Below are positions 37,479-56,752 of a DNA stretch of 64,000 bases, piece after piece. Positions within the stretch are counted from its first letter, which is position 1; every line of letters starts with the position of its first letter. Below the pieces are notes generated by a model. It saw nothing but the letters and a program-made list of their open reading frames with translations, did no database searches and was not told the origin of the DNA. Made by a program: the position numbers and the translations under genes. The stretch lies in sequence record OR545507.1; one strand, given 5' to 3'.

Positions 37479-37487
37479 ATTGTTCTC

Positions 37488-37676: not shown

Positions 37677-37677
37677 G

Positions 37678-37860: not shown

Positions 37861-37861
37861 A

Positions 37862-38053: not shown

Positions 38054-38054
38054 A

Positions 38055-38237: not shown

Positions 38238-38247
38238 GTTGTTCTCT

Positions 38248-39094: not shown

Positions 39095-39104
39095 TTGGTT
39101 TCCT

Positions 39105-39284: not shown

Positions 39285-39292
39285 AGTATTCC

Positions 39293-39475: not shown

Positions 39476-39483
39476 TTTCTTCC

Positions 39484-39878: not shown

Positions 39879-39888
39879 ATAGCACCTT

Positions 39889-40083
39889 TTAGAACTTAAA
39901 GATGAGGTTCAGGATAGAGCGGTACTTAGTTTCAGGGAACTGATGTTCTATTGCATAACGTGTCGCCATCCTGAAATCGTAATTGTAATATAGATTATCC
40001 TTTCTCATAGGTGGTGCTAAAGAGAATGATAGCTGGTCTTGCTTGTGTAGTTTACTACCATAGAAATCTTTATGATTATTCAT
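39889..40083 (-). CDS. MHKEYY-family small protein
   Basis: HKDFY...YRSILNLIFKF. Confidence 0.75.
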   Translation of the reverse strand: MNNHKDFYGSKLHKQDQLSFSLAPPMRKDNLYYNYDFRMATRYAIEHQFPETKYRSILNLIFKF

Positions 40084-40285
40084 AGAAGTAGATTAGTCCT
40101 ATTAAACCTGAGTACATAATATTTTTGTTATTGCATTCGATTGCTTCTAGAGTACTACGTATACAATTATTAAAGCAATCTCTACCGAAGTGAGTATTGG
40201 TACTTACAGGTGATACACTCCTTAGAAACAATTGTTCTTCGTTGCTAAGGTATTTGGTGTAGAATTCTTTATGTTCAGTATTCAT
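40076..40285 (-). CDS. MHKEYY-family small protein
   Basis: HKEFY...YSGLIGLIYFYE. Confidence 0.75.
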   Translation of the reverse strand: MNTEHKEFYTKYLSNEEQLFLRSVSPVSTNTHFGRDCFNNCIRSTLEAIECNNKNIMYSGLIGLIYFYE

Positions 40286-40286
40286 A

Positions 40287-40490
40287 TTAGTACTCGATTA
40301 AAAGGGCAAGGATATAATAGTATTGCATACTTTCTGCCCCTTGTAAAGCATTTCTTATGATATTACTCCTGTACGAGTTCAGGAGTTTAGGACAACGTTT
40401 GTAGTGTATAAAAGTATTTTGTGTATACAGTAGGCTTTCTCGTAGACCTTTTGTTGGTAGTGCATCGATGTAGTACTGTTCAATGTTCAT
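40287..40490 (-). CDS. MHKEYY-family small protein
   Basis: MNIEQYY...YYYILALLIEY. Confidence 0.75.
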   Translation of the reverse strand: MNIEQYYIDALPTKGLRESLLYTQNTFIHYKRCPKLLNSYRSNIIRNALQGAESMQYYYILALLIEY

Positions 40491-40714
40491 ATAGATAGCA
40501 GTACTAAGATTTTTGATAATTGTTTATTGCTATCCCCGCAGATGTTGCTGTGTAAAATACTCACAATGAGGGTATCAATTGCATTGTTCATCATAAGGGT
40601 GCATCTTGGACTATTATAATTTTTTAGCTCAATTAGCCACGAACTATCCGAGAGAAATTCCCCGTACTCTAGTTCATTTAGAGTATTGAGGTAGTACTTA
40701 AGAGTATTTGTCAT
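40487..40714 (-). CDS. MHKEYY-family small protein (first of array)
   Basis: LKYYLN...KILVLLSI; GGAG RBS. Confidence 0.7.
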   Translation of the reverse strand: MTNTLKYYLNTLNELEYGEFLSDSSWLIELKNYNSPRCTLMMNNAIDTLIVSILHSNICGDSNKQLSKILVLLSI

Positions 40715-40739
40715 GTGTAGTTCTCCTTATATTCCTTCT

Positions 40740-40770
40740 ATAGTACACCAGTACTGAAAGGATGTCAAGG
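40740..40770 (-). promoter_or_regulatory. sigma70-type promoter for MHKEYY array
   Basis: TTGACA-N17-TACTAT with AGTACT in spacer. Confidence 0.7.
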
Positions 40771-40816
40771 GTTTTCTTTATGGGGTAAATATGATATAAT
40801 GAATAAGGAGGGATTT

Positions 40817-41953
40817 ATGTTACCTTTTGTTAGAATGTTAAATTATGGGAACGTAGCACCAGAAAAACTAAAAGTTCGTGATATTGTTGCAGGTGCTAAT
40901 TCATTATTACTAATAACCGAGGATAATGAATTATGGGTGCGTGGTAATAATTCGTATGGCAAATTAGGTATAGGAACTGATACTATAGTGAATGTAACCG
41001 AGTGGACTAAAGTTAGAGATGATGTTAAGTTTGCTTGTGCTAGTAATTTAGTATGCGTTGTATTAACTGTAGATAATAAAATTTTCTACTGTGGTGATGA
41101 ATGGTTTGAATCTGGTGGTTCGACAAGTTCTAAAGTTGTTACATGGAAAGATGTTACGACACAATTTAGTGCAGTGAATCTAAGCACAGTACGTGAAATG
41201 AAAATGACTTCTTATTGTGTAGGATTACTTACAAATGATAATAGATTATATGCTAAAGGATATGATAATAACCAATCATTTGGTGGTTCAACAAGCAAAG
41301 TTAATGCTGTATTAGTTGCGTCAAATGTTTCAAAATTCTACACTTCTCTATCTGGTACTATATATTCTAGTACTACTGGTGGTTACTACCGCTGTGGTAT
41401 AAGCAATACTGGAGCATTGGGTACTAGCACAAATTTAACTTCTTATAATTTGTACTCTGCTCCCGAATTTGCATCCGAATGTGCAGTTGGTATGTCAACA
41501 TTAAACTCTGGTATATTATATTATGATACTAATGGTAGCACTAGATATGTTATAGCAGGTCAAAATAGATATTATCAACTAGGTAATTCTTCTTCAAATA
41601 CCACAAACGTATATTCGTATACAGAATTAACCGGATATAGAGGCAGGTTTAGGGATTTGTGGAGTGATATGAATAACTCTGTTCTTTCTTTTGCTATAAG
41701 CACAGATGGCAATACTTTATATTATGCTGGTACTAACACTACACTATCTTCTGGTGACCCTGGTGTTGAATATTCATCTACATTTAAAGAAGTACCACAC
41801 GGGTTTAATGATATAACAAAGGCGGCATCGTTAGCCTATCTATCTATAGTGCAAGATTCAACGGGATGGTATTATTCTGGAAATGCAACTACGTTATATG
41901 GTTTGCCATCGAGTGATGAATTTATACCATTACCATTACCAACAATAATTTAA
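40817..41953 (+). CDS. MLPF-leader RCC1/BLIP-II-like beta-propeller protein 1 (putative virion fibre/appendage protein)
   Basis: MLPFVRMLNYGNVAP; G-N-YGKLG-G repeats. Confidence 0.8.
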   Translation: MLPFVRMLNYGNVAPEKLKVRDIVAGANSLLLITEDNELWVRGNNSYGKLGIGTDTIVNVTEWTKVRDDVKFACASNLVCVVLTVDNKIFYCGDEWFESGGSTSSKVVTWKDVTTQFSAVNLSTVREMKMTSYCVGLLTNDNRLYAKGYDNNQSFGGSTSKVNAVLVASNVSKFYTSLSGTIYSSTTGGYYRCGISNTGALGTSTNLTSYNLYSAPEFASECAVGMSTLNSGILYYDTNGSTRYVIAGQNRYYQLGNSSSNTTNVYSYTELTGYRGRFRDLWSDMNNSVLSFAISTDGNTLYYAGTNTTLSSGDPGVEYSSTFKEVPHGFNDITKAASLAYLSIVQDSTGWYYSGNATTLYGLPSSDEFIPLPLPTII

Positions 41954-42024
41954 ATACAGGCCAGTACTTGATACTGGCTTTTCTTTTTTGTATTAAATAT
42001 AGTATAATGAATAAGGAGGGAAAT

Positions 42025-43227
42025 ATGTTACCTTTTGGAAGAATGGTTAAGTACGCAAATATTGCACCAGGTCCAGAACCTGTAGAGTTCTCAGATGTTT
42101 TACAACAACATTATACAAACTGTATGTATCTCCATAACCCAACTAATACTTTATATGGTTATGGTAGTAATAACTTTTACCAATTTGGTCTTGGGAATTC
42201 AGCAGCAGTTTCGTCATTTACAGTACTTGCAAGGAACTGTGCAGCCTTTTGGCTTGGTGTTCAAGGTTCATTGATGATTGATTTGGATAATAAAATATAC
42301 TACACTGGGTCGGTTGGTGCATTTTCTGATTATGGAGATGCAACACCTGTTAATGGTTATTTGACAACATGGACTGATGTTACTGTTGCATTTAATAAAA
42401 TAGGTGTTATGGCTAATATGATCAAGAGTGTATATATAGGTGAAAGTACTAGAATATTATTAACCGATGGTAGAGTAATTGCGTGTGGAAGAAATACTAA
42501 TGGTGAATGTGGCTCTGGTAATAAAAATTCCATCCCTACACTCACAGTTATGACTAATATGGGTGAAGTTACACATATGGCATGTTCATTACAAGGAACG
42601 CACTATATCAAATCAAATAAAGATGCATGGTTTTGTGGTAAGGATAACTTTGGTGAAAGTGGATGTGGTGGTAGTTTTGTTGTATATTTGAACAAATTCG
42701 TGATTAGTAATGTAGAACATATTAGTACTACATACGATGTTACTTGGTGGTTTACTACTGGTGGGCCTGTATATTATAGCGGGGCTAACAGTTCTGGACA
42801 AGCTGGTAATGGTACGACTACATCGGTAAATCAGCTAACACCAATTAGGAACACATCGGTCACGGTTGATGTAAGTAAGTACAGTACTTTTATTTGTCCA
42901 AGTAATATGGGAAATGCATCAATTGGTGCACCTATGGCACAATACGCACCATATGTTAGAAGTAGTGGTGCTAACTCATATGGTCAAGAAGGTAATGGAA
43001 CTAATACATTAGTTAGAACTTGGAATATTTTTAATCTTAGTGCAATAAGTGGTGGTTATGACAATGTTCTTATGGCATCTAAAGATTGGAGCAGAACCAT
43101 AATAATTACTAAAGATTATAAATTATATGCATGTGGTGGCTGGAATGGTAGTGGTGGTAGATTACCTGATGGCACTTATAGTATTACTACACTAACATTA
43201 ATGCCAACGCAGTTATGGCAACAATAG
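42025..43227 (+). CDS. MLPF-leader beta-propeller protein 2
   Basis: MLPFGRMVKYANIAP; GRNTNGECG, GANSYGQEG repeats. Confidence 0.8.
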   Translation: MLPFGRMVKYANIAPGPEPVEFSDVLQQHYTNCMYLHNPTNTLYGYGSNNFYQFGLGNSAAVSSFTVLARNCAAFWLGVQGSLMIDLDNKIYYTGSVGAFSDYGDATPVNGYLTTWTDVTVAFNKIGVMANMIKSVYIGESTRILLTDGRVIACGRNTNGECGSGNKNSIPTLTVMTNMGEVTHMACSLQGTHYIKSNKDAWFCGKDNFGESGCGGSFVVYLNKFVISNVEHISTTYDVTWWFTTGGPVYYSGANSSGQAGNGTTTSVNQLTPIRNTSVTVDVSKYSTFICPSNMGNASIGAPMAQYAPYVRSSGANSYGQEGNGTNTLVRTWNIFNLSAISGGYDNVLMASKDWSRTIIITKDYKLYACGGWNGSGGRLPDGTYSITTLTLMPTQLWQQ

Positions 43228-43235
43228 GAGGGAAT

Positions 43236-44345
43236 ATGTTACCTTTTGGAAGAATGATTAGGTATGGAAATATTGTCCCTGGTCCTAAAAAAATAATTAA
43301 AGTTGGTGCTTCTACCCAAGGCCAATTCTTATTGACTGATTCACATGATTTATATTACATAGGTAGAAATCAAGGTGGTGAATCTGGAAATGGTAATACC
43401 AACACGGTGTCTTCGTGGACATTAGTAAGTGCAGATGTTTCTAATTTTTTCGTGGGTGATCGTACACTTGTTATTATTAAAAATGATAATACGATATGGA
43501 CATCAGGTCAAACGTACTGGTTCTCATCTTCTACAACTACTTCTTACAGTACTGTATTAGTTGAAAGAACTAATTGGTTTACCAATGCTATACCAGTAAG
43601 TGAAATTGCTAATATTGTATGCACAAATGGTTTAATATTTGTACTTAGCACTAATTCAGTACTCTATGGTGCAGGAGATAATGGATATCGTGGTTCTTTG
43701 GGTATTGGTTCATCATCAATTTACACATTAACTCAATGTGCTACGAACGTTCGTAAAGTAATGACCAATGCGAATGATAGTATGTATCTTACATTAGATA
43801 ATAAGCTATATAGTTCTGGATGGAATAGTAGTGGGCAGCATGGTACGGGGAACCAAACACAAATTAACACTTGGGGATTGCGTAGTTCTGGTGTAATCGA
43901 TGCAGCCATTGGTGGTAATGCATTAAATTACTATAATGGTACATCATATTTCGTATGTGGTCAAACTCCAAACTTTCTTAGTTCAGGTACGACTACATTC
44001 CGTGCAGTTCCTTTAAGTACTTTGCCTAATAGTTCTCCATTGTTTATGACGAATTCACCTGCCTTAAATACTGCTACACAAATGGTAATTACTAGTACAT
44101 ATCAGAAGGGTGTTGGGGCGAACCGTGGTTTGGGATTAAACAATTCTCAAACTGGTGCTATATATAGTGCTACCAATTTACAATTACCCGTTGAAGTTAG
44201 TGAGATTAGGGATGTTCTTTTTAGTGATGGTTTGACATCGATATTAACCAAAAATGGAGACGTGTATAGTACTGGATCGTATTACGCCATTCCAGGTGCA
44301 ATCGAGGATGTTGCAGTCTTTACTAAAATTGATTTACCAAAATAA
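43236..44345 (+). CDS. MLPF-leader beta-propeller protein 3
   Basis: MLPFGRMIRYGNIVP; GWNSSGQHG repeats. Confidence 0.8.
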   Translation: MLPFGRMIRYGNIVPGPKKIIKVGASTQGQFLLTDSHDLYYIGRNQGGESGNGNTNTVSSWTLVSADVSNFFVGDRTLVIIKNDNTIWTSGQTYWFSSSTTTSYSTVLVERTNWFTNAIPVSEIANIVCTNGLIFVLSTNSVLYGAGDNGYRGSLGIGSSSIYTLTQCATNVRKVMTNANDSMYLTLDNKLYSSGWNSSGQHGTGNQTQINTWGLRSSGVIDAAIGGNALNYYNGTSYFVCGQTPNFLSSGTTTFRAVPLSTLPNSSPLFMTNSPALNTATQMVITSTYQKGVGANRGLGLNNSQTGAIYSATNLQLPVEVSEIRDVLFSDGLTSILTKNGDVYSTGSYYAIPGAIEDVAVFTKIDLPK

Positions 44346-44415
44346 CATAATGCCAGTACTCTGTACTGGCTTTCTTATTTGTATTAAATATAGTATAATG
44401 AATAAAGGAGGGAAT

Positions 44416-45585
44416 ATGTTACCTTTTGGAAGAATGATTAAGTACGGAAATATTGCACCTGCTAAACCAAATATTAAAAAAATACTTGCTAACAACTATA
44501 ATGTTGCTGTTTTAACAAACAGTGGTGATTTATATGTGCGTGGTGAGAATGCAAATGGTCTTTTGGGTTTAGGTCACAAAAATACTGTTACTACATGGAC
44601 TTATAGTACTTCTGGTGTTCAAGATTTTTGGATGGGAGCCACGACGATAGTTCTTAAGAAAAGCAATGATGAAATATGGTACAGTGGAAGTTCAACAACT
44701 GTTGGTATGAAAGGGGCAGCAGTATCAATATGGACTTCTGCTATGCCAACATTCGATACATTAACATTACCAATATTAGATATAGCAGTTAGTTATCAGA
44801 CTACAAGTGTGTTACTGTCAGACCAAACAATATGGAGTACTGGAGTGGGGTCAGATGGTCAGTTGGGTGATGGGACAACAACTAACAATATTGCTGGTAA
44901 ATTCGTCAAAAGTACTGTTCCGGCCGCAGCAAATCAATTACCTGTTAAATTGTTTGCAAGTAATTTAATGCACGGTTATGTTACAAACCAAGGATGGCTA
45001 TTTTATACAGGAAGAGTAAATGCAGTTACAAGTTCAGGAAGTAAGTTATATACTATATATTATGGTGCTCCTACCAGCTTAAGAAATACAATTAATATCA
45101 AGTACTACACGGAGAATGGTACTTCAATGGCAATGGCAATTGGTACTGATCCAAATGGAAAAACCATCATCGCAAATGGCGGTTCGAGAATATTTGGTGC
45201 ACAAGCAGATGGGACAAATGGTTCTCTCAATGATTATAGAGCATTTGAGGTTCAAACTGCTTCACTAATGCCACCCGGTGATGTAGTAAGCATTGCTAAC
45301 AATACTTCATATTATAACCAAGTTATTGCTACAACAGATGGTATATATTGTTGCGGCTACAATCAATCTTCAGAAGCTGGTATGTTAGGTATTGGTACAT
45401 CTACCAATGCATTGGTATATACCAAAGCAATCGTGCCTGATGGGTTTGATTATAGTAAGTCGCAGATGGCAGGTGGGTATAACCGAACTTATATAACTGA
45501 TGGTAATTTTGTATATAGCACAGGGACAAATGTCACATATGGTGGCGTTAGTAGCTTAGAATTTGTATTAGATTCACCAGTTTAA
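44416..45585 (+). CDS. MLPF-leader beta-propeller protein 4
   Basis: MLPFGRMIKYGNIAP; GENANGLLG, GSDGQLG. Confidence 0.8.
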   Translation: MLPFGRMIKYGNIAPAKPNIKKILANNYNVAVLTNSGDLYVRGENANGLLGLGHKNTVTTWTYSTSGVQDFWMGATTIVLKKSNDEIWYSGSSTTVGMKGAAVSIWTSAMPTFDTLTLPILDIAVSYQTTSVLLSDQTIWSTGVGSDGQLGDGTTTNNIAGKFVKSTVPAAANQLPVKLFASNLMHGYVTNQGWLFYTGRVNAVTSSGSKLYTIYYGAPTSLRNTINIKYYTENGTSMAMAIGTDPNGKTIIANGGSRIFGAQADGTNGSLNDYRAFEVQTASLMPPGDVVSIANNTSYYNQVIATTDGIYCCGYNQSSEAGMLGIGTSTNALVYTKAIVPDGFDYSKSQMAGGYNRTYITDGNFVYSTGTNVTYGGVSSLEFVLDSPV

Positions 45586-45656
45586 ATATATGCCAGTACT
45601 CTGTACTGGCATTCTTATTTGTATTAAATATAGTATAATGAATAAAGGAGGGAAAT

Positions 45657-46805
45657 ATGTTACCTTTTGCAAGAATGATGAATTATGGGAATATTGCCCC
45701 TGGTAAGGATAGGCGTTTTAAAATATATTCAAGTGATTCTATGTATCTTCATGATACTTATACTAATAAGTTGTATGCATCTTCTGCGACGAATTGGGGT
45801 ACTGGAACAGGTGTAGCATCGAGTAAATTTATTCTTTGTGCAGAGAATGTTAAACGAGTTCTATTGGAAGATAACAGTAGTAGTTGTCAATTGTATGAAG
45901 AGAAAGGTACTGGAAAAGTTTTTATCACTGGTAACACGAAGGCATTCACTGGTGTAACTGATACAAAAACTTTGTGGACGGACTGTACTACGTGGATAAC
46001 ATCAGGTGGTATTAATGTTTCTGATATAAAATACATGAGTAGTTTTAATGATATGAAGGTGAATTTGATAACAAACGATGGTACGTTGTATTGTTGTGGA
46101 GTTAACAATAACTCGAACCTATCATCATTTGGTGATGGTACAAACATTAATTCTTTTAACACATTCAAAAGGGTAGATACTATAACTTCGGTTAAAAAGG
46201 CAGTTGGTAACATATACCTAAAAGAAGATAATACTTTATGGGGTTGTGGTTTTAACTATTACTATCAGTTAGGTACAGGTAATCAAACTTCTATTACTGG
46301 GGTGACGATGATTGCTTCGGATGTTATAGATTTTGATGTAAGTTATCAAAGTACATTTTTTATTAAATCGGATAATAATTTGTACGCTTGTGGTAAACAG
46401 TTCGGTGCACAATACGGGAACGAATTTGGCACAGGTGGTACTTCTTCATCTACCGATATACAATACAAAACTCCGACATTATTGAGTTCAGGAGTTTATA
46501 CTCTATATACTTGTGTTAGTAACATGGCATCACATATAGCTAAAGGTGATGAAGTTCTATACGCATCTGGGTCGAATGGATTTGGTCAATTAGGTGTTGG
46601 TAATAATATTAATCAGTACTCATATACTCCTTCGTATACTTCGTTTAATAGTTCGTGTAATTTGGTACGCACTCCATCTGGTTCACTTATACTTACGGAC
46701 ACTGAGCAATTATATTATTGTGGGTATGCTATGGTAGTAATGGGGGGAATTGCTGGACAAAACATTCTTAGTTATACAGAAGTTGATATGTCATTTATAC
46801 AATGA
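45657..46805 (+). CDS. MLPF-leader beta-propeller protein 5
   Basis: MLPFARMMNYGNIAP; GFNYYYQLG, GSNGFGQLG. Confidence 0.8.
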   Translation: MLPFARMMNYGNIAPGKDRRFKIYSSDSMYLHDTYTNKLYASSATNWGTGTGVASSKFILCAENVKRVLLEDNSSSCQLYEEKGTGKVFITGNTKAFTGVTDTKTLWTDCTTWITSGGINVSDIKYMSSFNDMKVNLITNDGTLYCCGVNNNSNLSSFGDGTNINSFNTFKRVDTITSVKKAVGNIYLKEDNTLWGCGFNYYYQLGTGNQTSITGVTMIASDVIDFDVSYQSTFFIKSDNNLYACGKQFGAQYGNEFGTGGTSSSTDIQYKTPTLLSSGVYTLYTCVSNMASHIAKGDEVLYASGSNGFGQLGVGNNINQYSYTPSYTSFNSSCNLVRTPSGSLILTDTEQLYYCGYAMVVMGGIAGQNILSYTEVDMSFIQ

Positions 46806-46876
46806 TTTAATGCCAGTACACTGTACTGGCTTTCTTATTTGTATTAAATATAGTATAATGAATAAAGGAGGAATTT

Positions 46877-48019
46877 ATGTTACCTTTTGCAAGAATGATG
46901 AATTATGGGAATATTGCACCAGAACCAAAACCTCTATTTAAAAATAGATTACAAGCAAATTATAATACTCGTTTTTATTTGCATGTTAATGGTGACTTGT
47001 ACTGGTATGGTTCATCTTCATTTGGACAAGGTGGTAATGGTTCATTACAATCATCCACCGTATGGACCCGTGTGAATAATAATATTGAACGTTACTGGGG
47101 TGGTGTTCTTGGTTCCATTGCCATTAAGAATGATGGAACTATTTGGTTCACAGGTGCTAGTATAGTAATGCCACAAATCGGAACAAATACAAATGGGGTT
47201 TGGATTGATGTAACCCAGTACTTCACTGATTTTGGTGTCAGTGCTGATGATATTGATGGTATTGCTGTTGGGCAGAATTTGCGTGTATTTTTAAAAAATG
47301 GAAAATGGTTCTACTGTGGTACTGGCGAAGCTGGTGTATTTGGTAACGCGTCAACAGCTAATGTCACATCGTTCAGATACAGCACTATAGAAAATGTTAA
47401 AAGTTATGGCTGTTCTTTGCTCAGTACTGGGTTAGTACTTGATGATGGCTCCTATTGGTATGCAGGAAATACTGTTGCTCCTGGTAGTACAAAAACATCA
47501 AATATATTAAGTTTTACAAAAGACAATACGATCACCAATGCTATACAAGCTGTAAATACATACCGTACTTCATATATATTTCTTAATGATGGTTCAGTGA
47601 AGGTTGCTTCACCAAATGCATATGGTCAAGCTGGTGTAGGTACAGTATCAGCAGTACCAATGAGTACATTAATTCCCAATTTATCATTCCAAGGTGAAAT
47701 AGAGTTGGTGGGTGGTTTATCCAACAACGAAGGGAATGGATGTGTTGTTAAAAATAATAATAAGTTATATACTTGTGGTCGAAATACCTATGGTCTATGT
47801 GGTGTTAATCAAACATCCGAAAATATACTAACTTTCACCGAAATGGTTCTTGATGCATTAGAAGGAAGACGAATTTCAGGCTTCGTAAATGATAATTTCT
47901 ATTCAATGATAATTGATGAAAATAACAATTTGTATATGTGTGGTTTGGCTGAACTTGGAAATGTTCCAGTCAATAGAGTTCCAACAAGGGTTCCTGATTC
48001 ACTTCTACCGTGGAAATAA
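46877..48019 (+). CDS. MLPF-leader beta-propeller protein 6
   Basis: MLPFARMMNYGNIAP; GRNTYGLCG. Confidence 0.8.
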   Translation: MLPFARMMNYGNIAPEPKPLFKNRLQANYNTRFYLHVNGDLYWYGSSSFGQGGNGSLQSSTVWTRVNNNIERYWGGVLGSIAIKNDGTIWFTGASIVMPQIGTNTNGVWIDVTQYFTDFGVSADDIDGIAVGQNLRVFLKNGKWFYCGTGEAGVFGNASTANVTSFRYSTIENVKSYGCSLLSTGLVLDDGSYWYAGNTVAPGSTKTSNILSFTKDNTITNAIQAVNTYRTSYIFLNDGSVKVASPNAYGQAGVGTVSAVPMSTLIPNLSFQGEIELVGGLSNNEGNGCVVKNNNKLYTCGRNTYGLCGVNQTSENILTFTEMVLDALEGRRISGFVNDNFYSMIIDENNNLYMCGLAELGNVPVNRVPTRVPDSLLPWK

Positions 48020-48089
48020 TATAATGCCAGTATCAAGTACTGGCATTTCTTTTTGATTAAATATAGTATAACAAATAAAGGAGGGAATT

Positions 48090-49277
48090 ATGTTACCTTT
48101 TGCAAGAATGATGAATTATGGGAATATTGCCCCAGTACCACTTCAAATTAAGAAAATAATCCCAACTGATTTAGATGTTGTGGTTCTGTATACGGATGGT
48201 CAACTATATGCACGTGGGAATAATAGTTTTGGGAAATTCGGTAGAGGAAACAACACTGCATTAAAATCATGGACATTAATTAGAGAAAACGTTAACGATT
48301 GCTGGCTTACACAAGGAACTTTATTAGTAAAAGACAATGACTCAAATTATTATTACTGTGGATATGGTAGTCATATTGGTTTATCAACTAGTACTACTAC
48401 GTTTTTAAGTTATAACCAATATATTCAAAATTTGTACACACAAAGTTCAAGTACTTCAATTAAACAGATGTATGGAGGTACTACGTGGTTTACTTTCTTA
48501 ATGGACAATAATACAATATGGAGTACAGGGTGGAACAGTGCTAGACAATTCGCCGATGGAACGGGAACTACTTATGAAATAACCGATGGTTCATTTGTAA
48601 AAGCGGTCACACCTAATGTTGATATTGCACAAATACAGTCAACAAATAACTGTGTATTGTTGTTTGATAAACAAAATAATTTATATATTGGTGGTGTTAC
48701 ATCCGGTATAAGTTCCGCGACTACATGGACTTCATATAATCAATATACTTTATATCAACCAAATACAACATACACAAAAACGTTACAATACACAGGATGC
48801 TCAACTGGTGCAGTAAGTGCTTTAGTTGAAAATCCAAATACAGGAGCACGTCAGTTCCTTGTCGGTGGGTTAGCTAATAATGGGGCATGGGGAAATAACA
48901 CTACATCTAGCTCTGTTAATGGAGTTTTAGGAAATAACAGTACGACGTTACCACCCGGTACTTTGTATTCAATTCATACTGGATACCCACCACAATCTAG
49001 TATACTAATTACGAGTACTGGTGTATATGCAACTGGTTTAAATGCCAGTAGTTATGCTGGTTCATTGGGTATTGGTACTAGTGCAACTGTTGGTAAGTTT
49101 ACTGCATGTCCAATGCCTACACAAATAACATATTCTATGTATGATAAAATAAAAATATATAGAGGTTCATATCGTACATTTCTAACTGATATGAAAAATA
49201 TATATTCAACCGGAACTTATGATGATGGTGGTCCTAGTACAACTAGATATGTACTAGATACACCCCGACAATTATAA
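48090..49277 (+). CDS. MLPF-leader beta-propeller protein 7
   Basis: MLPFARMMNYGNIAP; GNNSFGKFG. Confidence 0.8.
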   Translation: MLPFARMMNYGNIAPVPLQIKKIIPTDLDVVVLYTDGQLYARGNNSFGKFGRGNNTALKSWTLIRENVNDCWLTQGTLLVKDNDSNYYYCGYGSHIGLSTSTTTFLSYNQYIQNLYTQSSSTSIKQMYGGTTWFTFLMDNNTIWSTGWNSARQFADGTGTTYEITDGSFVKAVTPNVDIAQIQSTNNCVLLFDKQNNLYIGGVTSGISSATTWTSYNQYTLYQPNTTYTKTLQYTGCSTGAVSALVENPNTGARQFLVGGLANNGAWGNNTTSSSVNGVLGNNSTTLPPGTLYSIHTGYPPQSSILITSTGVYATGLNASSYAGSLGIGTSATVGKFTACPMPTQITYSMYDKIKIYRGSYRTFLTDMKNIYSTGTYDDGGPSTTRYVLDTPRQL

Positions 49278-49349
49278 TATAATAGCCAGTACTCAGTACT
49301 GGCTTTTCTTTTTGTATTAAATATATTATAATGAATAAAGGAGGGAATT

Positions 49350-50087
49350 ATGTTACCTTTTGGAAGAATGATTAAGTACGGGAATGAAATTGAATATAAG
49401 CCACATGGTGAACAATTAATCACGACAATAGGAACAACACAATTTACAGTTCCTGCTGGCGTTACCGAAATATCAGTATGTGTTATTTCGCCGGGTGGTC
49501 AACGTGGTGCTGGCGGCGGCTTATCGTGGCGTAATAATATTCCGGTTACTAGTGGTGAGTACTTAAGTGTTTCTCTTACGCATACCAACACTACTACACC
49601 AGTTGAAAACGGTTTATATCGTGGAACTGAAAAACTATGTGTTAGCTTCACTGGTGCATATACGGTTGGTGGACTAGGTGGAAAAGCTGCTAACGCTATT
49701 AATGATGGTGGTGGTAATGGTGGCAATACTGGTGTAAGTGGTGGTGCAGTCATTGGTGGTGGTGCTGGTGGCTACACAGGTAAAGGTGGTAACGGAGATG
49801 CAATCACTGGTGAAAATGGTGCTGGCGGCGGCGGGGGCGGTGGTACATTCTATAATACCTCGTTCATTGGTACGGGTGGTGGTACTGGTATCATTGTTCA
49901 AGGTGCTAATGGTATTGGTGGTAGCTACGGTGGTTCATATAATGGTGGTGCTGGTAGTGGTGGTGCTGGTAAGATGTATGGTGGTGGTGGTAGTATATGG
50001 GATAATTCTTCTTATACGGCTGCTGGTGGTGGTGCTGTGCGAATAATATGGGGAAATGGGAGATATTATCCTAACAATTCAGTATAA
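49350..50087 (+). CDS. MLPF-leader glycine-rich protein (fibre-like)
   Basis: same leader followed by FTVPAGVTEISV and GGGAGG-rich domain, no RCC1 repeats. Confidence 0.75.
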   Translation: MLPFGRMIKYGNEIEYKPHGEQLITTIGTTQFTVPAGVTEISVCVISPGGQRGAGGGLSWRNNIPVTSGEYLSVSLTHTNTTTPVENGLYRGTEKLCVSFTGAYTVGGLGGKAANAINDGGGNGGNTGVSGGAVIGGGAGGYTGKGGNGDAITGENGAGGGGGGGTFYNTSFIGTGGGTGIIVQGANGIGGSYGGSYNGGAGSGGAGKMYGGGGSIWDNSSYTAAGGGAVRIIWGNGRYYPNNSV

Positions 50088-50157
50088 AATATAGGCCAGT
50101 ACAGAGTACTGGCTTTTCTTTTTGATTAAATATAGTATAATGAATAAAGGAGGAAAT

Positions 50158-51333
50158 ATGTTACCTTTTGCAAGAATGGTTAAGTATGGAAATATTAAAC
50201 CTGCACCTTCTGGTGTATTAAAGATTAGTACATCGTCATCACATATGGGTATGTTATTTGATAGTGGTAACTTATATCTACGTGGAAGTGGTGCACATTA
50301 TAGGCTAGGAAATAATAGTACGGAGTATGTACAAAATGGGTGGGTACAGTGTCCATATAAAGTTTCTAATGTTTGGTGTTTATTCGCAGGGACAATTATA
50401 CTTACGACTGACGGAGAATTTTACTTAGCAGGGCAAATGAACTATGTCGGTGTATCTGCATCACCTGTTCCCGGATGGACTAATATTACATCTATATTGT
50501 CTACAATTCCAAGCCTTACTACAGTTCAAGATATAGCTTCTACCGAAACTACCGCATCCAATGGTTCTTTGTTAATTCTGTTAAGTGATGGTAACTTATA
50601 TGGGATAGGCCGTAATGCTGGGGGTGAATTGGGTGTTACTGGAATAAAATCAACACCTATTTTGATTAACACGGGTGTTACTTTAATCGCAGGAACACAG
50701 TCGGGTGGTGCTTTCCATTTTGTAAAAAATGGACAATATTACAGATGTGGTAATAATGCAAGTTATAACCTAGGTTCAAGTTCATCTAAACTATCCACAT
50801 TTACAGTAAGTACTGATATATCTGGAACAGTTATTGGTATTTCATGTACTCCTGAAACCACTTCAGTACTTACATCCAATAGAAATAAGATTAATGTATA
50901 TACTGCTGGAAAAAACACTGATTATTGTTTAGGAATAGGGTATGGCGACACTACTATTATCATGAGTCCATTTAGTACCACTCCTGTAATTAGTGGTATT
51001 ATACCAGATGCTGGGTCGATGAACAATCACAGTTTGAATTATTTTATAATGGCAATGACACAGAATGGTAAACTTTATACATGTGGTAGTGGTGTTCCTC
51101 TTGGTTGGCCTGTTACTACTGCATCAGAAAGATCTTATTACCACCAGGTACAATATGAGGATATGGATGTTGCACCAGATGTTAATGCATTTTCAGTACA
51201 AGGTGGTTCTGGTGTGTTATACGCGTTAGTAGGGACTAATGAGGTGTACTGGTGTGGTAACGGGTCTATGTTTCAGGAACAGAGTCCAGGTACACAACAA
51301 GTTAAAATGAAGAAAATGATTTTACCAGAATAG
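50158..51333 (+). CDS. MLPF-leader beta-propeller protein 9
   Basis: MLPFARMVKYGNIKP; GRNAGGELG. Confidence 0.8.
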   Translation: MLPFARMVKYGNIKPAPSGVLKISTSSSHMGMLFDSGNLYLRGSGAHYRLGNNSTEYVQNGWVQCPYKVSNVWCLFAGTIILTTDGEFYLAGQMNYVGVSASPVPGWTNITSILSTIPSLTTVQDIASTETTASNGSLLILLSDGNLYGIGRNAGGELGVTGIKSTPILINTGVTLIAGTQSGGAFHFVKNGQYYRCGNNASYNLGSSSSKLSTFTVSTDISGTVIGISCTPETTSVLTSNRNKINVYTAGKNTDYCLGIGYGDTTIIMSPFSTTPVISGIIPDAGSMNNHSLNYFIMAMTQNGKLYTCGSGVPLGWPVTTASERSYYHQVQYEDMDVAPDVNAFSVQGGSGVLYALVGTNEVYWCGNGSMFQEQSPGTQQVKMKKMILPE

Positions 51334-51341
51334 GAGTGAAT

Positions 51342-52484
51342 ATGTTACCTTTTGGAAGAATGGTTAAGTACGGGAATATTATAATCCCACTTGATATAAA
51401 AAAAGTGGATTTAACAATAAATGGTTGTATAATACTTACAAGTGATGGTAAATTATATGCAAGTGGGACTCAATCAGCAGGTCAATTTGGATTAGGAAAT
51501 AGAACAACACTTACAGTACGTACATTAATAGCCGAAAATGTGGTTAATTTTTGGTTTAGTCAGTCTGGATTAACTATTTTAAAAAATGATAGTTCATATT
51601 GGTTTAGTGGAGCAGCATATGCCTATGGAGATAGTGGTAATGTTTTTATTAACATTGATAGTTTAATCAAAGACAAATTTGACAATGCGAGTGAAATATA
51701 TGTTGCACGTGATCATGCAACTATTATTGTAAACTCAGATGGTTCAGTTTGGGTTTTAGGTTCTAATTTATATAGTATGATTGGGTTAGCAAGTACTACA
51801 ACAAACGCCCCTACATGGACACAAAATACAAACCTTACTGGTGTTTCTAAAATGCAATTTGGTCATCTGAACGCATGTGGAATAAGATCGAATGGCGACG
51901 TTGTTGCGTGGGGTGAGAACAGATTCAACTGCTTCACAACTGTGGGCGGTACTGGTTACCTGACACCAAGAGTAGTTAAGTCAAATGTGATTGATTTTTA
52001 TTTAACTGCAACATCTTGTTTTATGTGGAGTGATGCTACTTCTGTTTATTTTAGTGGCTATACTGGGGACACTGGATTATTAAATTCTGCGGCTGGTACT
52101 ACCTTTCAGTCATACAATATATACAGTGTAGCTCAACCGGAAACATATGTAAGTTCAGAGTTTCGTTTTATAAAGCATACAAACTACAACTATGGTAATG
52201 CTGTTAACTTACCAGTATACGTTAAATTTAGAATTAATGGTGAAGTTTATAGTAGTGGATATAACTTAAGTAGTAGTTTGGGGGTAAATTCCGTTTCCAC
52301 CAGCGTAAAAAATACAACTTTAGTTCCAGGTGCATCAAAAATGACATCGTGGGTGGCTGGTGATACTAATGTTAAATTAGCTACTATTGATGGTAGTTTA
52401 TATGGTGCAGGTAACGTACAATATATTTTAGATAAACCAAGTCAAGAAATTTATCCCACATATCAAAATTTAAATATAATATAA
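51342..52484 (+). CDS. MLPF-leader beta-propeller protein 10
   Basis: MLPFGRMVKYGNII; GTQSAGQFG. Confidence 0.8.
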   Translation: MLPFGRMVKYGNIIIPLDIKKVDLTINGCIILTSDGKLYASGTQSAGQFGLGNRTTLTVRTLIAENVVNFWFSQSGLTILKNDSSYWFSGAAYAYGDSGNVFINIDSLIKDKFDNASEIYVARDHATIIVNSDGSVWVLGSNLYSMIGLASTTTNAPTWTQNTNLTGVSKMQFGHLNACGIRSNGDVVAWGENRFNCFTTVGGTGYLTPRVVKSNVIDFYLTATSCFMWSDATSVYFSGYTGDTGLLNSAAGTTFQSYNIYSVAQPETYVSSEFRFIKHTNYNYGNAVNLPVYVKFRINGEVYSSGYNLSSSLGVNSVSTSVKNTTLVPGASKMTSWVAGDTNVKLATIDGSLYGAGNVQYILDKPSQEIYPTYQNLNII

Positions 52485-52494
52485 AGGAGGGAAT

Positions 52495-53674
52495 ATGTTA
52501 CCTTTTTCTAGAATGGTTAAGTACGGGAATATAGCACCTGTATATGAATCTAGTGTGATTAAAATGCAAGCACCATCAGCTTTTACCAACAACACATTGA
52601 TGATTCTGTATAAGAACGGTGATTTGTGGGGTATTGGCGGTAACAATGCTGGTATATTCGGTCTTGGAAATACAACGACACAGACCAAATGGGGTCGCTT
52701 AATGCAAAATGTGAAAAATTTTTGGTGCACAAGGAATGCTTCATATAGCTTAGTTCAGACCAATGATAATAAATTTTATTATGCAGGTTGGAACCTTTGG
52801 ACTGGTACATCTAGTGCAGTTCAAAGTACTACATTTGTTGATTGTACGTCTTATTTTTCAGGTTTTAATGTGGATAATATCAAGGAGATATATCCAAATG
52901 TTCGTAATATGTTTTTACTAACAAATGATAGTGTTCTTTACGCAATAGGTGATAATTCGACCTATGAGTTGGGTAGTAGTTCATCTACACTTACATCATT
53001 TACACAGGTTAATATTAATGTTAAAAAGGTTAGTTCATTTTTCAATAGTCCGACTTGGATAATTAAAAATGATAATTCAGTATGGCGATGTGGTAAAACT
53101 AGTACTGGTACATTGTTAACTGGTTCTGCTACTGATACGTTGACGATTTGGACAAAGTATAGTTTTCCTACAGGACAGTACCCCGTTGATATAATTTCAT
53201 ATAACAATATGTTGGGTATAGTTCTTAATGTAGATAATACTTATCCGCTATATGGTGTAGGGTCACAAAATTCACGGACAATTAGGAAATGGTGTTCTAT
53301 CTAATACTAATAAGATATCTTTAACGCCACAAAGTACTTATTTACAATTAACTAATGTTTCCGATTTTGAATTTATACAAACATATTCACAAAATCCTAG
53401 GGGATTATTATATAGAAATGGAAGTCGTATTTTTGGAACAGGGTATAATAATTATGGACAGCTTGGTAACAATTCATCTAATAATGCTTCAATTTTCGTC
53501 CAAGCACAATTTCCAAATTCTGTAGTTTATGATCCGTCAACATCGTTGGTTGCTGCGAATGACAATGCATTATTTGCATATGTGAATGGGAAATTATACT
53601 ACACTGGTATGTCTCCAGTAGGGACAGTTGTTGGTACATGGACTTTAACTGAATACCAATTGCCACAAATTTAA
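52495..53674 (+). pseudogene. MLPF-leader beta-propeller protein 11, frameshifted near 53275
   Basis: ORF stops at 53304, but the shifted frame continues GQLGNG...GYNNYGQLGNN...EYQLPQI to a stop at 53674. Confidence 0.75.
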
Positions 53675-53684
53675 GGAGAAAATT

Positions 53685-54854
53685 ATGTTACCTTTTGGAA
53701 GAATGTTAAAGTACGGAAATATTAAACCAACTCTTCCTGAAATAAAGAAATTGGATGGTAGTCAATTACATGTCGGATTACTTTATAGTACAGGGAATAT
53801 GTACATGCGTGGTTCTGGTTCGAACTATAAATTAGGTACAGGGGATGCTAGTGATGTATTAGGTGGTTGGGTACATGTACCCTATGAAGTTGATGATTTT
53901 TGGGCGTGTGTATCCGGTACATTAATAAAGACTGTTGATAATAAATTATATTGTGCAGGTCTATACATGGGTGGATATTTTGGGGCTAGTGGTTCATATG
54001 TTAACTGGACTGAAGTAACTTCATTATTTGTAGGTATTGACGTGTCGCAAATAAAGAATATAGAATTTACGTCAGCGGGTACTTCCGGTAGTACACTAAT
54101 ATTGATGTTAGATGGTCGTTTATATGGGTTCGGTATGAACAGTAGATCTGAGTTAGGTGTTAATAACAAAGTTGTATCTCCCATTCTTATAGATACTGGG
54201 GTAAGTGCAATAGGAGCACATAAGTTAGGCGGTTCATCGTTCCATTATATAAAAGGCGGTAAGTACTACAGATGTGGAACATCGGTTGGTAGTAATATTG
54301 GAAGTTCTTCTTTAACTACTTTTACGGTATTGAGTATTCCTGATAACGTTATATCTATGCAAATATTATATGACAACGTACAGTTATTATGTTTAGGAAG
54401 TTCTGGATATAGTATCTATATGGCTGGTTCTAATGATTATGGTGGAAGAGGTGTTGGCGGTTCTACGGTTTATACTACATTCAGGAAAATAGATCTTACA
54501 GGATTTGGTGTTGTTCCCAGTGAAATACTATTTGAAAATGCTGGAAATGGTTATGTTAATATATCAACTGATAGTACTGGAGTATATACATGTGGTGGTG
54601 GAGCGGGTGTTAACGGTTTAGGTAGACCAACTAATGTAATACCAAGTTCACAGTTGGGAGTAGTTCAGTTCAGTACTGGAGTAGAACAATCAAATATAAG
54701 TCGTGTGTATTCACAGAGTTCGAGTTCTGTTATATATTGTATAGTCAATAATGAATTGTACTGGGCTGGTAGTAATTCATATTTTACTGATCAAACCACA
54801 AATACTGGTACACAATTTTCATTTATTAAGATGAAGGATATGCCTTCTGCTTAG
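53685..54854 (+). CDS. MLPF-leader beta-propeller protein 12
   Basis: MLPFGRMLKYGNIKP; similar to copy 9. Confidence 0.8.
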   Translation: MLPFGRMLKYGNIKPTLPEIKKLDGSQLHVGLLYSTGNMYMRGSGSNYKLGTGDASDVLGGWVHVPYEVDDFWACVSGTLIKTVDNKLYCAGLYMGGYFGASGSYVNWTEVTSLFVGIDVSQIKNIEFTSAGTSGSTLILMLDGRLYGFGMNSRSELGVNNKVVSPILIDTGVSAIGAHKLGGSSFHYIKGGKYYRCGTSVGSNIGSSSLTTFTVLSIPDNVISMQILYDNVQLLCLGSSGYSIYMAGSNDYGGRGVGGSTVYTTFRKIDLTGFGVVPSEILFENAGNGYVNISTDSTGVYTCGGGAGVNGLGRPTNVIPSSQLGVVQFSTGVEQSNISRVYSQSSSSVIYCIVNNELYWAGSNSYFTDQTTNTGTQFSFIKMKDMPSA

Positions 54855-54925
54855 ATTTTATGCCAGTGCCTTGTACTGGCATTTTTTGTCCTAAATATAA
54901 TAACGATTTACATTTGGAGGATACA

Positions 54926-55331
54926 ATGCTACCCTTTCGAAGAATTATCACATCATCAAAAAAGAACATACAACCTTCTGTTACAAAAATAGCTTCATCT
55001 GATAAGACAGTTTTTGCCCTTATGTCAGATGGTACGTTGTACAGTAGAGGTTCTCAATAGTTTGGGTTATTAATATTTTTCTAATCATATTATAACTTTA
55101 TTAGGTGTTTACTCAACTGGTTATAACACAAGACAATTAGGTATAGGTACACAAACCGATGCGTCGGCCTATACCAAATGTGTACTACCAATAGAGATGA
55201 ATAACGTATATGTTACAGCAACTTTATACAGAACTTACTTAACCGATGGTATACAAATTTACAGTACTGGACAAAATATTACAGACGGTGGAGTTGCCAG
55301 TACTGTATTTGTCAAAGATTCACCATTTTAG
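54926..55331 (+). pseudogene. MLPF-family remnant (N- and C-termini only)
   Basis: MLPFRRI...YSRGSQ* then TGYNTRQLGIG...YRTYLTDGIQIYSTG...KDSPF, like the C-termini of copies 4 and 7. Confidence 0.7.
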
Positions 55332-55974
55332 GAATATTGTACAGAGTGTATGCAGTTATTTTAGAACTCTTTTTAAATTCATCATAGAGAAAATTCAAAA
55401 TTCTGGAGCATTCAATATACTTTTCAATATCTTTATGGATTAATGAGTACTGAAACATTAAATCAGATGATATATTGTAGGTACTACCTTTTAAACTGTT
55501 TAAAATATCACAGATTTCAGGGTTTACGGGTACTTCGTCAAAATTATCATCTAAAACATTTATTTCAAAATCAAAGCCATCTTTGTTTTTGATTAATTTG
55601 ATAATAGAATCACCATAAACATTATATTGTTTTAATGGATTTACTACAATGTTAAAAAGATTGGATGTATTACAATCAATATCCATAAAGTATGTATTAT
55701 CATTGTACTTAATATTGAAACATCCGTACTCAATAAAATCACCAGGAGTTATTGATGAGTTTCTTCTCGTTTCAACATAAGAAGCTTTAATTTTGTTTTT
55801 ATGTAAAAGAGTAATAAATTTCTTAGACTGTTTAGCACCAGCTAAGTAAGTATTATAACTTGGTCTTTTAAAGATTATAGGACTAGACTTCTCGCCAGAG
55901 AAATATTTTTTTATAAATTTACGTTGTTTAAAAAAATAGTTTTTATAAAACAAACCTAATTTTGATTTCATCAT
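55312..55974 (-). CDS. hypothetical protein, FQxSLV-motif family
   Basis: SDLMFQYSLIH. Confidence 0.75.
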   Translation of the reverse strand: MMKSKLGLFYKNYFFKQRKFIKKYFSGEKSSPIIFKRPSYNTYLAGAKQSKKFITLLHKNKIKASYVETRRNSSITPGDFIEYGCFNIKYNDNTYFMDIDCNTSNLFNIVVNPLKQYNVYGDSIIKLIKNKDGFDFEINVLDDNFDEVPVNPEICDILNSLKGSTYNISSDLMFQYSLIHKDIEKYIECSRILNFLYDEFKKSSKITAYTLYNIPKMVNL

Positions 55975-55986
55975 AACTCCTTATAC

Positions 55987-56014
55987 ATCCAGTACTTAAT
56001 AGTACTGGATTTTT
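55987..56014. terminator. AGTACT-containing hairpin
   Basis: ATCCAGTACT-TAAT-AGTACTGGAT-TTTT. Confidence 0.6.
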
Positions 56015-56015: not shown

Positions 56016-56387
56016 TTATGACATACGCTTATTATGAATGGAATTATGAATGGATTTTAAATAATTATATAATTTTATCAATCCACTACCAGTAGCTACA
56101 AACAGTAGTGCTGTTGGTATCATACATCCAAACATGGTTATTAATTCATGTATTTCCATACCATCACTATTTGGTCCCACATCAAATATAACAACCAAAA
56201 CAACACCTAAAATGCTTAGACAATAATATCCCATAAAGACCATAAAAGTGATATATCCGGCACTTGATTTAATATTACATAACATATTATACACTGGATT
56301 AATACAGAAGAAGTATAATAACCATACCAGTGTTCCAGTACTGAACATAATAATTGAAATAATGGAAAATATCTCACGGTAACTCAT
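56016..56387 (-). CDS. small multi-pass membrane protein
   Basis: three hydrophobic segments, basic C-terminus. Confidence 0.75.
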   Translation of the reverse strand: MSYREIFSIISIIMFSTGTLVWLLYFFCINPVYNMLCNIKSSAGYITFMVFMGYYCLSILGVVLVVIFDVGPNSDGMEIHELITMFGCMIPTALLFVATGSGLIKLYNYLKSIHNSIHNKRMS

Positions 56388-56388
56388 A

Positions 56389-56751: not shown

Positions 56752-56752
56752 A

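Follow-up and report, generated by a model that had tools for sequence, protein, structure and literature searches.

Within the first 64,000 bases of the genome of Escherichia phage Sharanji, which form the window analyzed here, thirteen plus-strand genes in a row (gp106-gp118, positions 40817 to 55331) each open with the residues MLPFxR, and this short leader, or tag, is carried by bodies that otherwise diverge widely. On balance, we consider it somewhat probable that the array encodes interchangeable external ligand-binding heads, which would be docked to the virion through the leader. The window matches positions 1-64000 of the Sharanji record (OR545507; genome length 350,079 bp) exactly, and megablast of positions 40000-56000 returned full-length matches at 100% identity to Sharanji, at the same coordinates, and to phage vB_EcoM_G17, both members of Asteriusvirus (the 121Q/PBECO4/phAPEC6 group), ~350-kb RaK2-like jumbo myophages. 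The record annotates one of gp106-gp118 as an 'RCC1 repeat protein' and the others as hypothetical, and the Sharanji paper does not mention the array. The ATG codons of the MLPF leaders lie at 40817, 42025, 43236, 44416, 45657, 46877, 48090, 49350, 50158, 51342, 52495, 53685 and 54926 (genes 1 to 13 hereafter), and the bodies comprise ten intact RCC1-type propellers (369-400 aa), a further propeller broken by a frameshift, a remnant left by a deletion, and a TNF-like/glycine-rich domain. An earlier interpretation, made from the letters of this DNA without database searches (the sequence-only reading), had described 13 consecutive MLPF genes, most of them continuing M..YGNI.P, and eleven propellers of ~380-400 aa. 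The gene count held, with 12 genes recovered by a whole-genome leader pattern and the 13th at 54926 (MLPFRRIITSS), as did the continuation, which reads MLPFxRMxxY(G/A)N in 12 of the 13, and the RCC1/BLIP-II type of the propellers; their number was corrected to ten intact copies (369-400 aa), gene 11 being frameshifted. The last blades of gene 13 finish at 55331, where that reading had also ended the array.

A 36-nt degenerate pattern of the leader (ATGYTNCCNTTY...TAYGSNAAY) matched 12 times in the whole Sharanji genome, always on the plus strand and within 40817-53685; the minus strand and a reversed control gave no match. Genome-wide, ORFs (open reading frames) opening M-[LIV]-P-F comprised, beyond these 12, only gene 13 and two unrelated ORFs elsewhere with TTG/GTG starts. 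Pairwise identity is 76% over the first 15 residues versus 27% (range 21-38%) over the bodies, residues M1, L2, P3, F4, Y10 and N12 are invariant in an alignment of 17 sequences, and codons 1 to 7 do not differ by a single nucleotide among the 12 genes, even at synonymous sites. Gene conversion alone was rejected as the source of this conservation, because distant phages retain the peptide with other codons: CCA/CCG replace CCT, AGG replaces AGA, and MIPF may stand for MLPF, the leaders starting MLPFSRIIQYGN in GAP32 gp1, MIPFxRILxYGN in Munch, and MLPFPIIS in fHe-Yen9-04. Retention of the tag across genera with different codons therefore argues for selection on the peptide, and not for gene conversion only. 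The 12 genes hold no conserved (L/I)-x-E prohead-protease site after the leader, with [LIV]xE within the first 40 residues in four of them, at differing positions, and the first Glu past residue 40 in six, whereas the capsid protein does have such sites. The AAGGAGG motif precedes the MLPF ATG, and both GenBank records (Sharanji and G17) begin the genes there; some ORF listings begin upstream, giving MNKEGN-MLPF. An ATG inside the ribosome-binding site (RBS) region (ATGAATAAGGAGG) is in frame in four of the repeated cassettes described below (40799, 42007, 44398 and 50140), adding MNK(E/G)G(F/N); in the other cassettes a 1-nt difference puts the upstream ATG out of frame, and ORF callers therefore choose inconsistent starts.

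The bodies behind the tag are compact folds of at least two kinds. Several array members match the Pfam profiles PF00415 (34.0-36.1 bits, cut-off 21.7) and PF13540 (38.5-39.3 bits, cut-off 22), PF25390 (RLD) reaches only 56-95 bits where its whole-domain cut-off is 150, and the propeller bodies match PHROG 4219 with E-values from 1e-48 to 1e-113. The AlphaFold2 model of gene 7 is a seven-blade propeller (predicted local distance difference test, pLDDT, 82.6; predicted template modelling score, pTM, 0.85) that begins at about residue 20, with residues 1-19 lying outside it at pLDDT 52-66. Its best Foldseek match is UVR8 (E 1.6e-17, template modelling score 0.72), followed by the RLD of HERC2, RPGR, and RCC1; identity to the best solved structural matches is 12-18%, and 12% to RCC1 itself. 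The array proteins have isoelectric points (pI) of 5.1-9.2 and no basic tail. Profiles, model and Foldseek matches together support the RCC1/BLIP-II-like bodies that had been proposed from the letters.

The protein of gene 8 matches PHROG 4474, and its homologues carry PF21722; the protein itself has no Pfam match at E<=1. It was modelled at pLDDT 91.5 as a TNF-like sandwich with a polyglycine lattice, the fold again starting at residue 20 and the leader scoring 47-65, so that across the two models residues 1-19 are low in pLDDT (47-66) and outside both folds. The leader was also considered as a closing strand of the propeller and rejected, as the strands start at residue 20 and the same leader is found on non-propeller folds. 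With VIA-align, the gene 8 model matched the Pam3 tail fibre gp24 (7ypx_A; Z 13.0, root-mean-square deviation 3.4, 171 residues), the tail-tip protein of mycobacteriophage Bxb1 (9d93_Qa; Z 9.1, 25% identity), the glycine-rich domain of ALK (Z 6-7), and the S16 gp38 adhesin (Z 3.6); Foldseek returned weak matches only, and comparison of the glycine-rich profile of gene 8 with the sequences of solved structures gave nothing meaningful. In Pam3 gp24, N-terminal helices dock to the baseplate wedge, and the TNF-like/glycine-rich part has been proposed to bind the receptor (PMC9608196, PMC9942802). Gene 8 has the MLPF tag (residues 1-19) where Pam3 gp24 has its docking part. RCC1 domains are likewise present inside annotated tail-fibre proteins of other phages. 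In Cronobacter phage CR9 (7620-10552), the RCC1-type gene CR9_033, with an MFPIPAL start, comes directly after, and on the same strand as, CR9_032, a 'putative tail fiber protein 2'.

Published mass spectrometry has detected array members in purified virions of four relatives (phAPEC6, CBB, GAP32 and JP4), in line with the earlier proposal that these are virion proteins. The phAPEC6 virions contained gp003, 005, 006, 007, 009, 010, 549 and 551, with 1-5 unique peptides and 3-18% coverage each (PMC7247149, Table 1), and we mapped these listed proteins to MLPF genes of the syntenic array, of whose ~14 proteins 8 were thus detected. One of them, gp007, is a frameshifted form of 270 aa; its presence in virions indicates that the whole propeller is not needed and points to the N-terminal part. 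GAP32 gp1 was detected by virion mass spectrometry (PMC5259590), two JP4 array proteins, JP4_577 and JP4_581, were detected by one peptide each (PMC12648861), and in CBB five of the seven array genes (CBB_548-554) are annotated as structural, CBB_551 and CBB_552 having been detected by mass spectrometry by the CBB authors. Phages of the 121Q/RaK2-like group bear unexplained hair-like fibres on capsid and sheath, and Sharanji belongs to this very group (PMC7247149, PMC5259590), in line with the sequence-only reading, which had linked the array to hair-fibred jumbo phages. CBB has hairs and no RCC1 gene (PMC5259590), so the hairs cannot consist of RCC1 bodies as such; CBB does have tag-bearing Kelch and lectin proteins.

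The tag extends well beyond Asteriusvirus, and onto other folds. A pattern scan of IMG/VR retrieved eight contigs, seven jumbo genomes (348-378 kb) and one contig of 109 kb, and a relaxed scan of these loci found tandem arrays of 5-9 M[LI]PF genes. The tagged bodies include, besides RCC1, Kelch propellers (PF01344, PF13964, PF24681), a Laminin_G_3/ConA-like lectin (PF13385) and glycine-rich domains, with tagged Kelch and Laminin_G_3 proteins present in tandem arrays of every RaK2-like jumbo genome matched by the scan. The CBB array (CBB_548-554) consists of seven MLPF genes with Kelch and Laminin_G_3 bodies, PHROG 6011, named 'virion structural protein', is a 221-position profile beginning at the tag, and tagged lectin-type relatives reach Serratia phage BF, Erwinia Eneladusviruses and Xanthomonas phage XbC2. 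The tag was not met in RaK2-type (Alcyoneusvirus) records, where no search was aimed at its absence. In rV5-like phages (Vequintavirinae), RCC1 and glycine-rich homologues occur without the MLPF tag and with a tag of their own, MLEMLNL or MLE(L/M)L, which, judged by sequence, looks like a second, unrelated tag system of the same logic. An MLEMLNL-type leader is found on three tandem RCC1-type genes of Escherichia phage A7_1 (5007-7845), and also on many metagenomic glycine-rich (PF21722-type) proteins.

Most array genes are also preceded by a repeated expression cassette that runs into the tag codons. A repeat search found an 11-copy family of 85 nt, a 6-copy family of 111 nt, and a 7-copy terminator family of 42 nt. 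The full block stands before genes 2 and 4 to 9 (starts 42025, 44416, 45657, 46877, 48090, 49350 and 50158), i.e. seven of the 13, which agrees with a near-identical block having been noted before about half of the genes. It runs from a GCCAGTAC-loop-GTACTGGC hairpin through a T-run, the box TTAAATATAGTATAAT, AAGGAGG and the ATG to ~45 conserved coding nt. Gene 1 has the promoter/RBS portion only, gene 13 has the hairpin and a degenerate box, and genes 3, 10, 11 and 12 abut the preceding stop codon with an RBS only, so that the 13 genes would form about nine transcription units. Terminator-like hairpins number 19 on both strands versus 5.4 +/- 2.1 in shuffles, and eight of the 19 lie on the plus strand behind array genes, near-identical, each followed by a T-run and the conserved box; the G17 record independently annotates ARNOLD terminators at the cassette hairpins.

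The cassette box reads TTAAATA and then TATAAT, with a TAAATA core and 33-nt spacing as in late promoters; a promoter scan found no -35 hexamer paired with its TATAAT at 16-18 nt. It matches the late TATAAATA at six of eight positions, and the exact TTAAATA/TATAAT variant is found only in the array, barring a near copy before gp352, which adjoins a tail-fibre assembly gene. The exact T4-type TATAAATA lies 36-55 nt before the start codons of capsid, scaffold, baseplate and other structural genes, and 24-55 nt upstream when the lysozyme-region genes are counted too, and its sites outside the window (183285, 184494, 190445, 192330, 196980 and 203019) form a clean late-promoter set for Sharanji. 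A sigma factor resembling gp55 is encoded by RaK2-like phages, whose structural genes are preceded by an ATAAATA motif (PMC5259590). The promoter claim of the sequence-only reading, which cited the T4 late promoter, is right only in part: the capsid and baseplate genes have the full TATAAATA, and the cassette reads TTAAATA plus TATAAT. GAP32, Munch and fHe-Yen9-04 likewise have a GGGTAAATA box ahead of their first array gene, and both the cassette box and its hairpin recur before array genes of Salmonella phage Munch. Given this conservation in relatives, the element is probably a promoter.

Content and order of the array vary between phages that are otherwise nearly the same. Sharanji, 121Q, PBECO4 and phAPEC6 share 95-97% of their genomes at 98-99.8% identity, and their arrays differ. 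With letters for orthologous types (at least ~85% identity), a prime for a diverged copy, a lower-case i for a fragment, and 'frag' for a short piece with no close match, the arrays read A B C D E F G H I J K L M in Sharanji, E F C F' G H E' N i K O M in 121Q, B C F' E G frag N P Q M in PBECO4, and E E'' F C B' D' G H N I K O L M in phAPEC6. In 121Q, PBECO4 and phAPEC6, nothing resembles types A and J at more than ~28% identity. When Sharanji was aligned with these three by megablast, the blocks had 22 inner edges, every one of which falls -98 to +50 nt from a leader ATG, and thus inside the cassette or the tag codons. Parts of 44300-50200 occur in 20 public runs from 12 studies; RNA runs contain only small portions of this region. 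In the four metagenomic DNA contig sets compared for module depth, gene 4 (44416-45585) is absent or far lower in depth than its neighbours in some runs, and gene 6 (46877-48019) is absent from three of the four. The contigs end at cassettes, and at 44454-44461, the end of the tag, they run into at least four different bodies; as assembly graphs break at repeats anyway, the metagenome contigs show natural content variation and not recombination events as such. The array is thus variable in content and order across 121Q, PBECO4, phAPEC6 and metagenomes, where invariance among relatives would have spoken against the earlier proposal, and the block edges at cassette and leader agree with its suggestion that the DNA repeat is tied to swap, duplication and loss. 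When the ends of the circular phAPEC6 record MK817115 are joined, a two-gene array unit appears twice, 2,423 bp apart, and 2,423 bp is also the difference between the length of that record (352,598 bp) and the length given in the paper (350,175 bp); the repeated unit may be either a real tandem duplication or an assembly overlap.

Along the plus strand, the array begins with a promoter-like box, GGTAAATATGATATAAT, and an AAGGAGG RBS without an upstream terminator (40784-40816), followed by gene 1 (gp106; 40817-41953, 378 aa), a leader plus RCC1-type propeller with matches of only ~27% in 121Q, PBECO4 and phAPEC6. The first full cassette (41958-42024; hairpin terminator 41958-41980, T-run, TTAAATATAGTATAAT at 41993-42008, AAGGAGG) leads to gene 2 (gp107; 42025-43227, 400 aa), which gene 3 (gp108; 43236-44345, 369 aa) abuts with an RBS only, its MLPF start at 43236 comparing with 43215 in the record annotation. 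Gene 4 (gp109; 44416-45585, 389 aa) follows the cassette at 44352-44415 (hairpin 44352-44370, box 44384-44399), gene 5 (gp110; 45657-46805, 382 aa), 92% identical to the virion-detected phAPEC6 gp549, follows that at 45590-45656 (hairpin 45590-45612, box 45624-45639), gene 6 (gp111; 46877-48019, 380 aa) that at 46812-46876 (hairpin 46812-46830, box 46844-46859), and gene 7 (gp112; 48090-49277, 395 aa), the modelled propeller, that at 48023-48089 (hairpin 48023-48047, box 48057-48072). Genes 2 to 7 all join the leader to an RCC1 propeller. The cassette at 49284-49349 (hairpin 49284-49304, box 49317-49332) precedes gene 8 (gp113; 49350-50087, 245 aa), with the leader and the TNF-like/glycine-rich domain of Pam3 gp24 tail-fibre type, and the last full cassette (50093-50157; hairpin 50093-50115, box 50126-50141) precedes gene 9 (gp114; 50158-51333, 391 aa), a leader plus RCC1 propeller with 87% identity to the virion-detected phAPEC6 gp006. 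Gene 10 (gp115; 51342-52484, 380 aa), again leader and RCC1 propeller, is of a type absent from 121Q, PBECO4 and phAPEC6. Gene 11 (gp116; 52495-53304, 269 aa) carries the leader and the first blades up to a frameshift, with the remaining blades open in another frame (53261-53674), and is 99% identical to the virion-detected phAPEC6 gp007. This frameshift (52495-53674) is common to 121Q (121Q_238), phAPEC6 (gp007) and G17 at 98-99% identity, and may reflect either a tolerated pseudogene whose N-terminal part is still incorporated or a programmed shift. Gene 12 (gp117; 53685-54854, 389 aa), a leader plus RCC1 propeller, is 99% identical to the virion-detected phAPEC6 gp010. A hairpin terminator (54860-54882) and a degenerate CCTAAATATAATAA box (together 54860-54925) lead to gene 13, the array end in all four phages compared, of which an N-terminal remnant of 44 aa (MLPFRRIITSS...; 54926-55060) and, in another frame, C-terminal propeller blades (55074-55331) are left.

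The array is flanked by two tandem minus-strand paralogue families, with ~17 genes of 59-81 aa upstream (36711-40714) and about eight small membrane-protein genes of 104-141 aa downstream (56016-58800), the latter family being syntenic beside the array in fHe-Yen9-04 and in CBB, where it follows on the opposite strand as in Sharanji. A 220-aa minus-strand gene downstream (55312-55974) was considered as a conserved partner or chaperone and rejected, having no similarity to the genes in the same position in fHe-Yen9-04 and GAP32. Compared with these two phages, the neighbouring genes are not conserved, and no partner was found among them.

We propose that the array would encode a set of interchangeable, low-copy virion proteins, each consisting of a flexible N-terminal tag of ~15-19 residues (MLPFxRMxxYGNIxP) and one compact, presumably ligand-binding head. 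The tag would act as a plug by which all heads fit one site, or one class of sites, on the particle exterior (a fibre, sheath or capsid anchor), and the virion would display a mixture of adhesin heads that could widen or tune its attachment to cell surfaces. Most genes would then be self-contained modules bounded by the terminator/promoter/RBS cassette and the tag codons, and homologous recombination between the ~100-nt repeats could insert, delete, duplicate and reorder them. An external location is suggested by the structural analogy of gene 8 to fibre tips, by the lectin or propeller nature of all heads, by the RCC1 domains in annotated tail-fibre proteins elsewhere and beside a tail-fibre gene in CR9, and by the lack of a protease site after the tag. 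The sequence-only interpretation is partly supported: its propeller bodies, hair-fibred phage group, virion presence, variability and separate shared leader hold, its promoter type does so only in part, and docking of the leader to a virion component, a place outside the capsid, receptor binding and a role in forming or tipping the hairs are proposals. Several points weigh against our proposal. Docking through the tag, its partner and the place of the proteins on the virion are all putative; at 15 residues, the anchor would be far shorter than those described for fibres and tailspikes; and the propellers come without a trimerization or shaft element. A homotrimer prediction for gene 8 scored 0.00, which is evidence neither for nor against a trimer. 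Peptide counts in virions are low (1-5 unique), and the phAPEC6 list includes thymidylate synthase, a RecA-like protein and a single-stranded DNA-binding protein (SSB), so that some array detections could be carry-over. We infer the timing class of the cassette promoter from its box, which differs from the TATAAATA of capsid and baseplate genes, so that late timing would be a tentative assignment. Finally, a constant leader, a variable body and a polymorphic locus are equally the signature of T4 internal proteins, which reside inside the head (PMC3012670).

This last point underlies the strongest of the alternatives, which we nevertheless regard as rather unlikely: the tag may be a capsid-targeting sequence, with the heads packaged in the capsid interior, perhaps within the inner body seen in phAPEC6, and released together with the DNA, as are the diverse T-even internal proteins, which have only a targeting leader in common and counter host defences. 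The locus logic is the same (a constant leader, unrelated bodies, a hyperplastic region and shared regulatory DNA), Sharanji has a T4-type prohead protease, and mass spectrometry of virions cannot separate inside from outside; moreover, phAPEC6 has an inner body of 91 x 18 nm, for which its authors suggested the RCC1 proteins (PMC7247149). However, the conserved (L/I)-x-E site that such a leader should end in is missing here and present in the capsid protein, the fold of gene 8 is of an external tail-fibre/tail-tip type, the heads are lectin-like or propellers of near-neutral pI (5-9) and not basic DNA-associated proteins, and several paralogues at 1-2 unique peptides each fit poorly with a bulk inner body. 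A further reading follows the name under which the proteins are often recorded, 'regulator of chromosome condensation' or 'DNA condensation', by which they would organize packaged or replicating phage DNA. The annotation stands in many records, Pfam RCC1 repeats are present, and the role was suggested by the phAPEC6 authors (PMC7247149), yet the name was taken from a single eukaryotic protein with a widespread propeller architecture, and the best structural match here is a plant photoreceptor, UVR8. The proteins have no basic charge, Kelch, lectin and fibre-tip domains are found behind the same tag at this locus, and near-identical phages differ in how many copies and which types they have, which would be unusual for a core component of DNA packing. 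RCC1 proper is a chromatin-bound Ran exchange factor, and Ran is not known from bacteria. This role appears highly improbable, and 'DNA condensation' is an unsupported functional name for the array proteins.

The proteins might instead be no virion parts at all, but be abundant inside the cell or released from it, for instance as decoys or anti-defence binders, and end up in virion preparations as contaminants; the leader would then serve translation, stability or some other intracellular interaction. The low peptide counts and the evident contaminants in the same lists would fit, the seven identical first codons could reflect a constraint on translation initiation, and the array sits among accessory paralogue families, outside the structural module; in the Vequintavirinae phage A7_1, similar genes come after runs of small genes. 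We hold this to be quite unlikely, as four independent mass-spectrometry studies of four phages detected array proteins, 8 of ~14 in phAPEC6, the peptide is kept across genera with different codons, and the gene 8 protein has a fibre-tip fold. A bolder extension of the external-head proposal, to which we give only tentative credence, is that RaK2-like jumbo phages use the MLPF/MIPF peptide as a universal plug, mounting at least four unrelated folds on one class of virion sites and possibly forming or tipping the hairs, so that particles would be adhesin mosaics supplied by a gene pool that the cassettes shuffle; an MLEMLNL-type plug may do likewise in rV5-like phages.

Parts of this locus have been described before. 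The CBB paper lists 121Q_234-238, 240-242 and 244-248, together with the PBECO4 copies, as RCC1-like (PMC5259590), and the phAPEC6 paper reports eleven RCC1-like proteins, with eight 'DNA condensation'/hypothetical array proteins in virions (PMC7247149). These published 121Q-like RCC1 arrays are the same locus, for which DNA condensation or the inner body was the function proposed. It is accordingly already in print that 121Q-like phages carry RCC1-like genes in multiple copies, that the products occur in virions, and that tandem duplication is one way in which jumbo genomes grow. In the literature searched, we found no description of the shared tag, its place outside the fold or its use on at least four unrelated folds across RaK2-like genera, nor of the Pam3-type fibre fold of gene 8, the repeated cassette or cassette-bounded array shuffling.

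Among known systems, the T-even internal proteins (IPI-III) resemble the array in having a short constant leader, unrelated bodies, a hyperplastic locus and a place in virions (PMC3012670). They differ in that in T4 the leader is cut off at a prohead-protease site at its end, while no such site lies behind the MLPF tag, and in that the array encodes large binding modules as bodies, one with an external fibre-tip fold. The promoter-stem-loop (PeSL) cassettes of T4-type phages similarly place a repeated terminator and promoter between non-essential genes, where recombination leads to insertion, deletion and replacement of modules (PMC2839356, PMC4122927), and in the array, too, the block edges fall at the cassettes. 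PeSLs have strong sigma-70-type early promoters, the array cassette a TTAAATA/TATAAT box with which no -35 hexamer was paired, and, unlike in PeSLs, the array repeat extends ~45 nt into the coding region, making the protein tag part of the recombination substrate. Gene 8 shares the TNF-like plus glycine-rich architecture of Pam3 gp24, the Bxb1 tail tip, S16 gp38 and the ALK domain, and differs from Pam3 gp24 in having the 19-residue MLPF tag in place of an N-terminal helical bundle; no chaperone gene was identified adjacent to it. The anchors of multi-tailspike and branched-fibre systems are folded trimeric domains of ~100 or more residues on beta-helix depolymerases. Like the array, the branched systems of CBA120-type phages, RaK2 and phiKp24 (the latter a relative within the wider RaK2 group, PMC9700779) combine several receptor-binding proteins with a common N-terminal attachment and variable distal parts in one virion; the array differs in its constant 15-residue peptide, its compact domains, and the lack of an evident shaft or trimerization element.

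Asteriusvirus-type phages are repeatedly isolated as therapy candidates, while the array is annotated as 'DNA condensation'. If the tag is a docking peptide, the tag and cassette would offer a handle for swapping or adding heads in phage engineering and display, and should the peptide prove to be a universal plug, a 15-residue tag would be enough to display foreign proteins on these virions. For the phages themselves, a docking tag would explain why near-identical jumbo phages differ in their surface-binding repertoire, and would provide concrete candidates for the hairs or hair tips. It would also extend two ideas from T4, leader-directed incorporation of diverse proteins and cassette-mediated shuffling of modules, to another virus lineage and to external-fibre folds.

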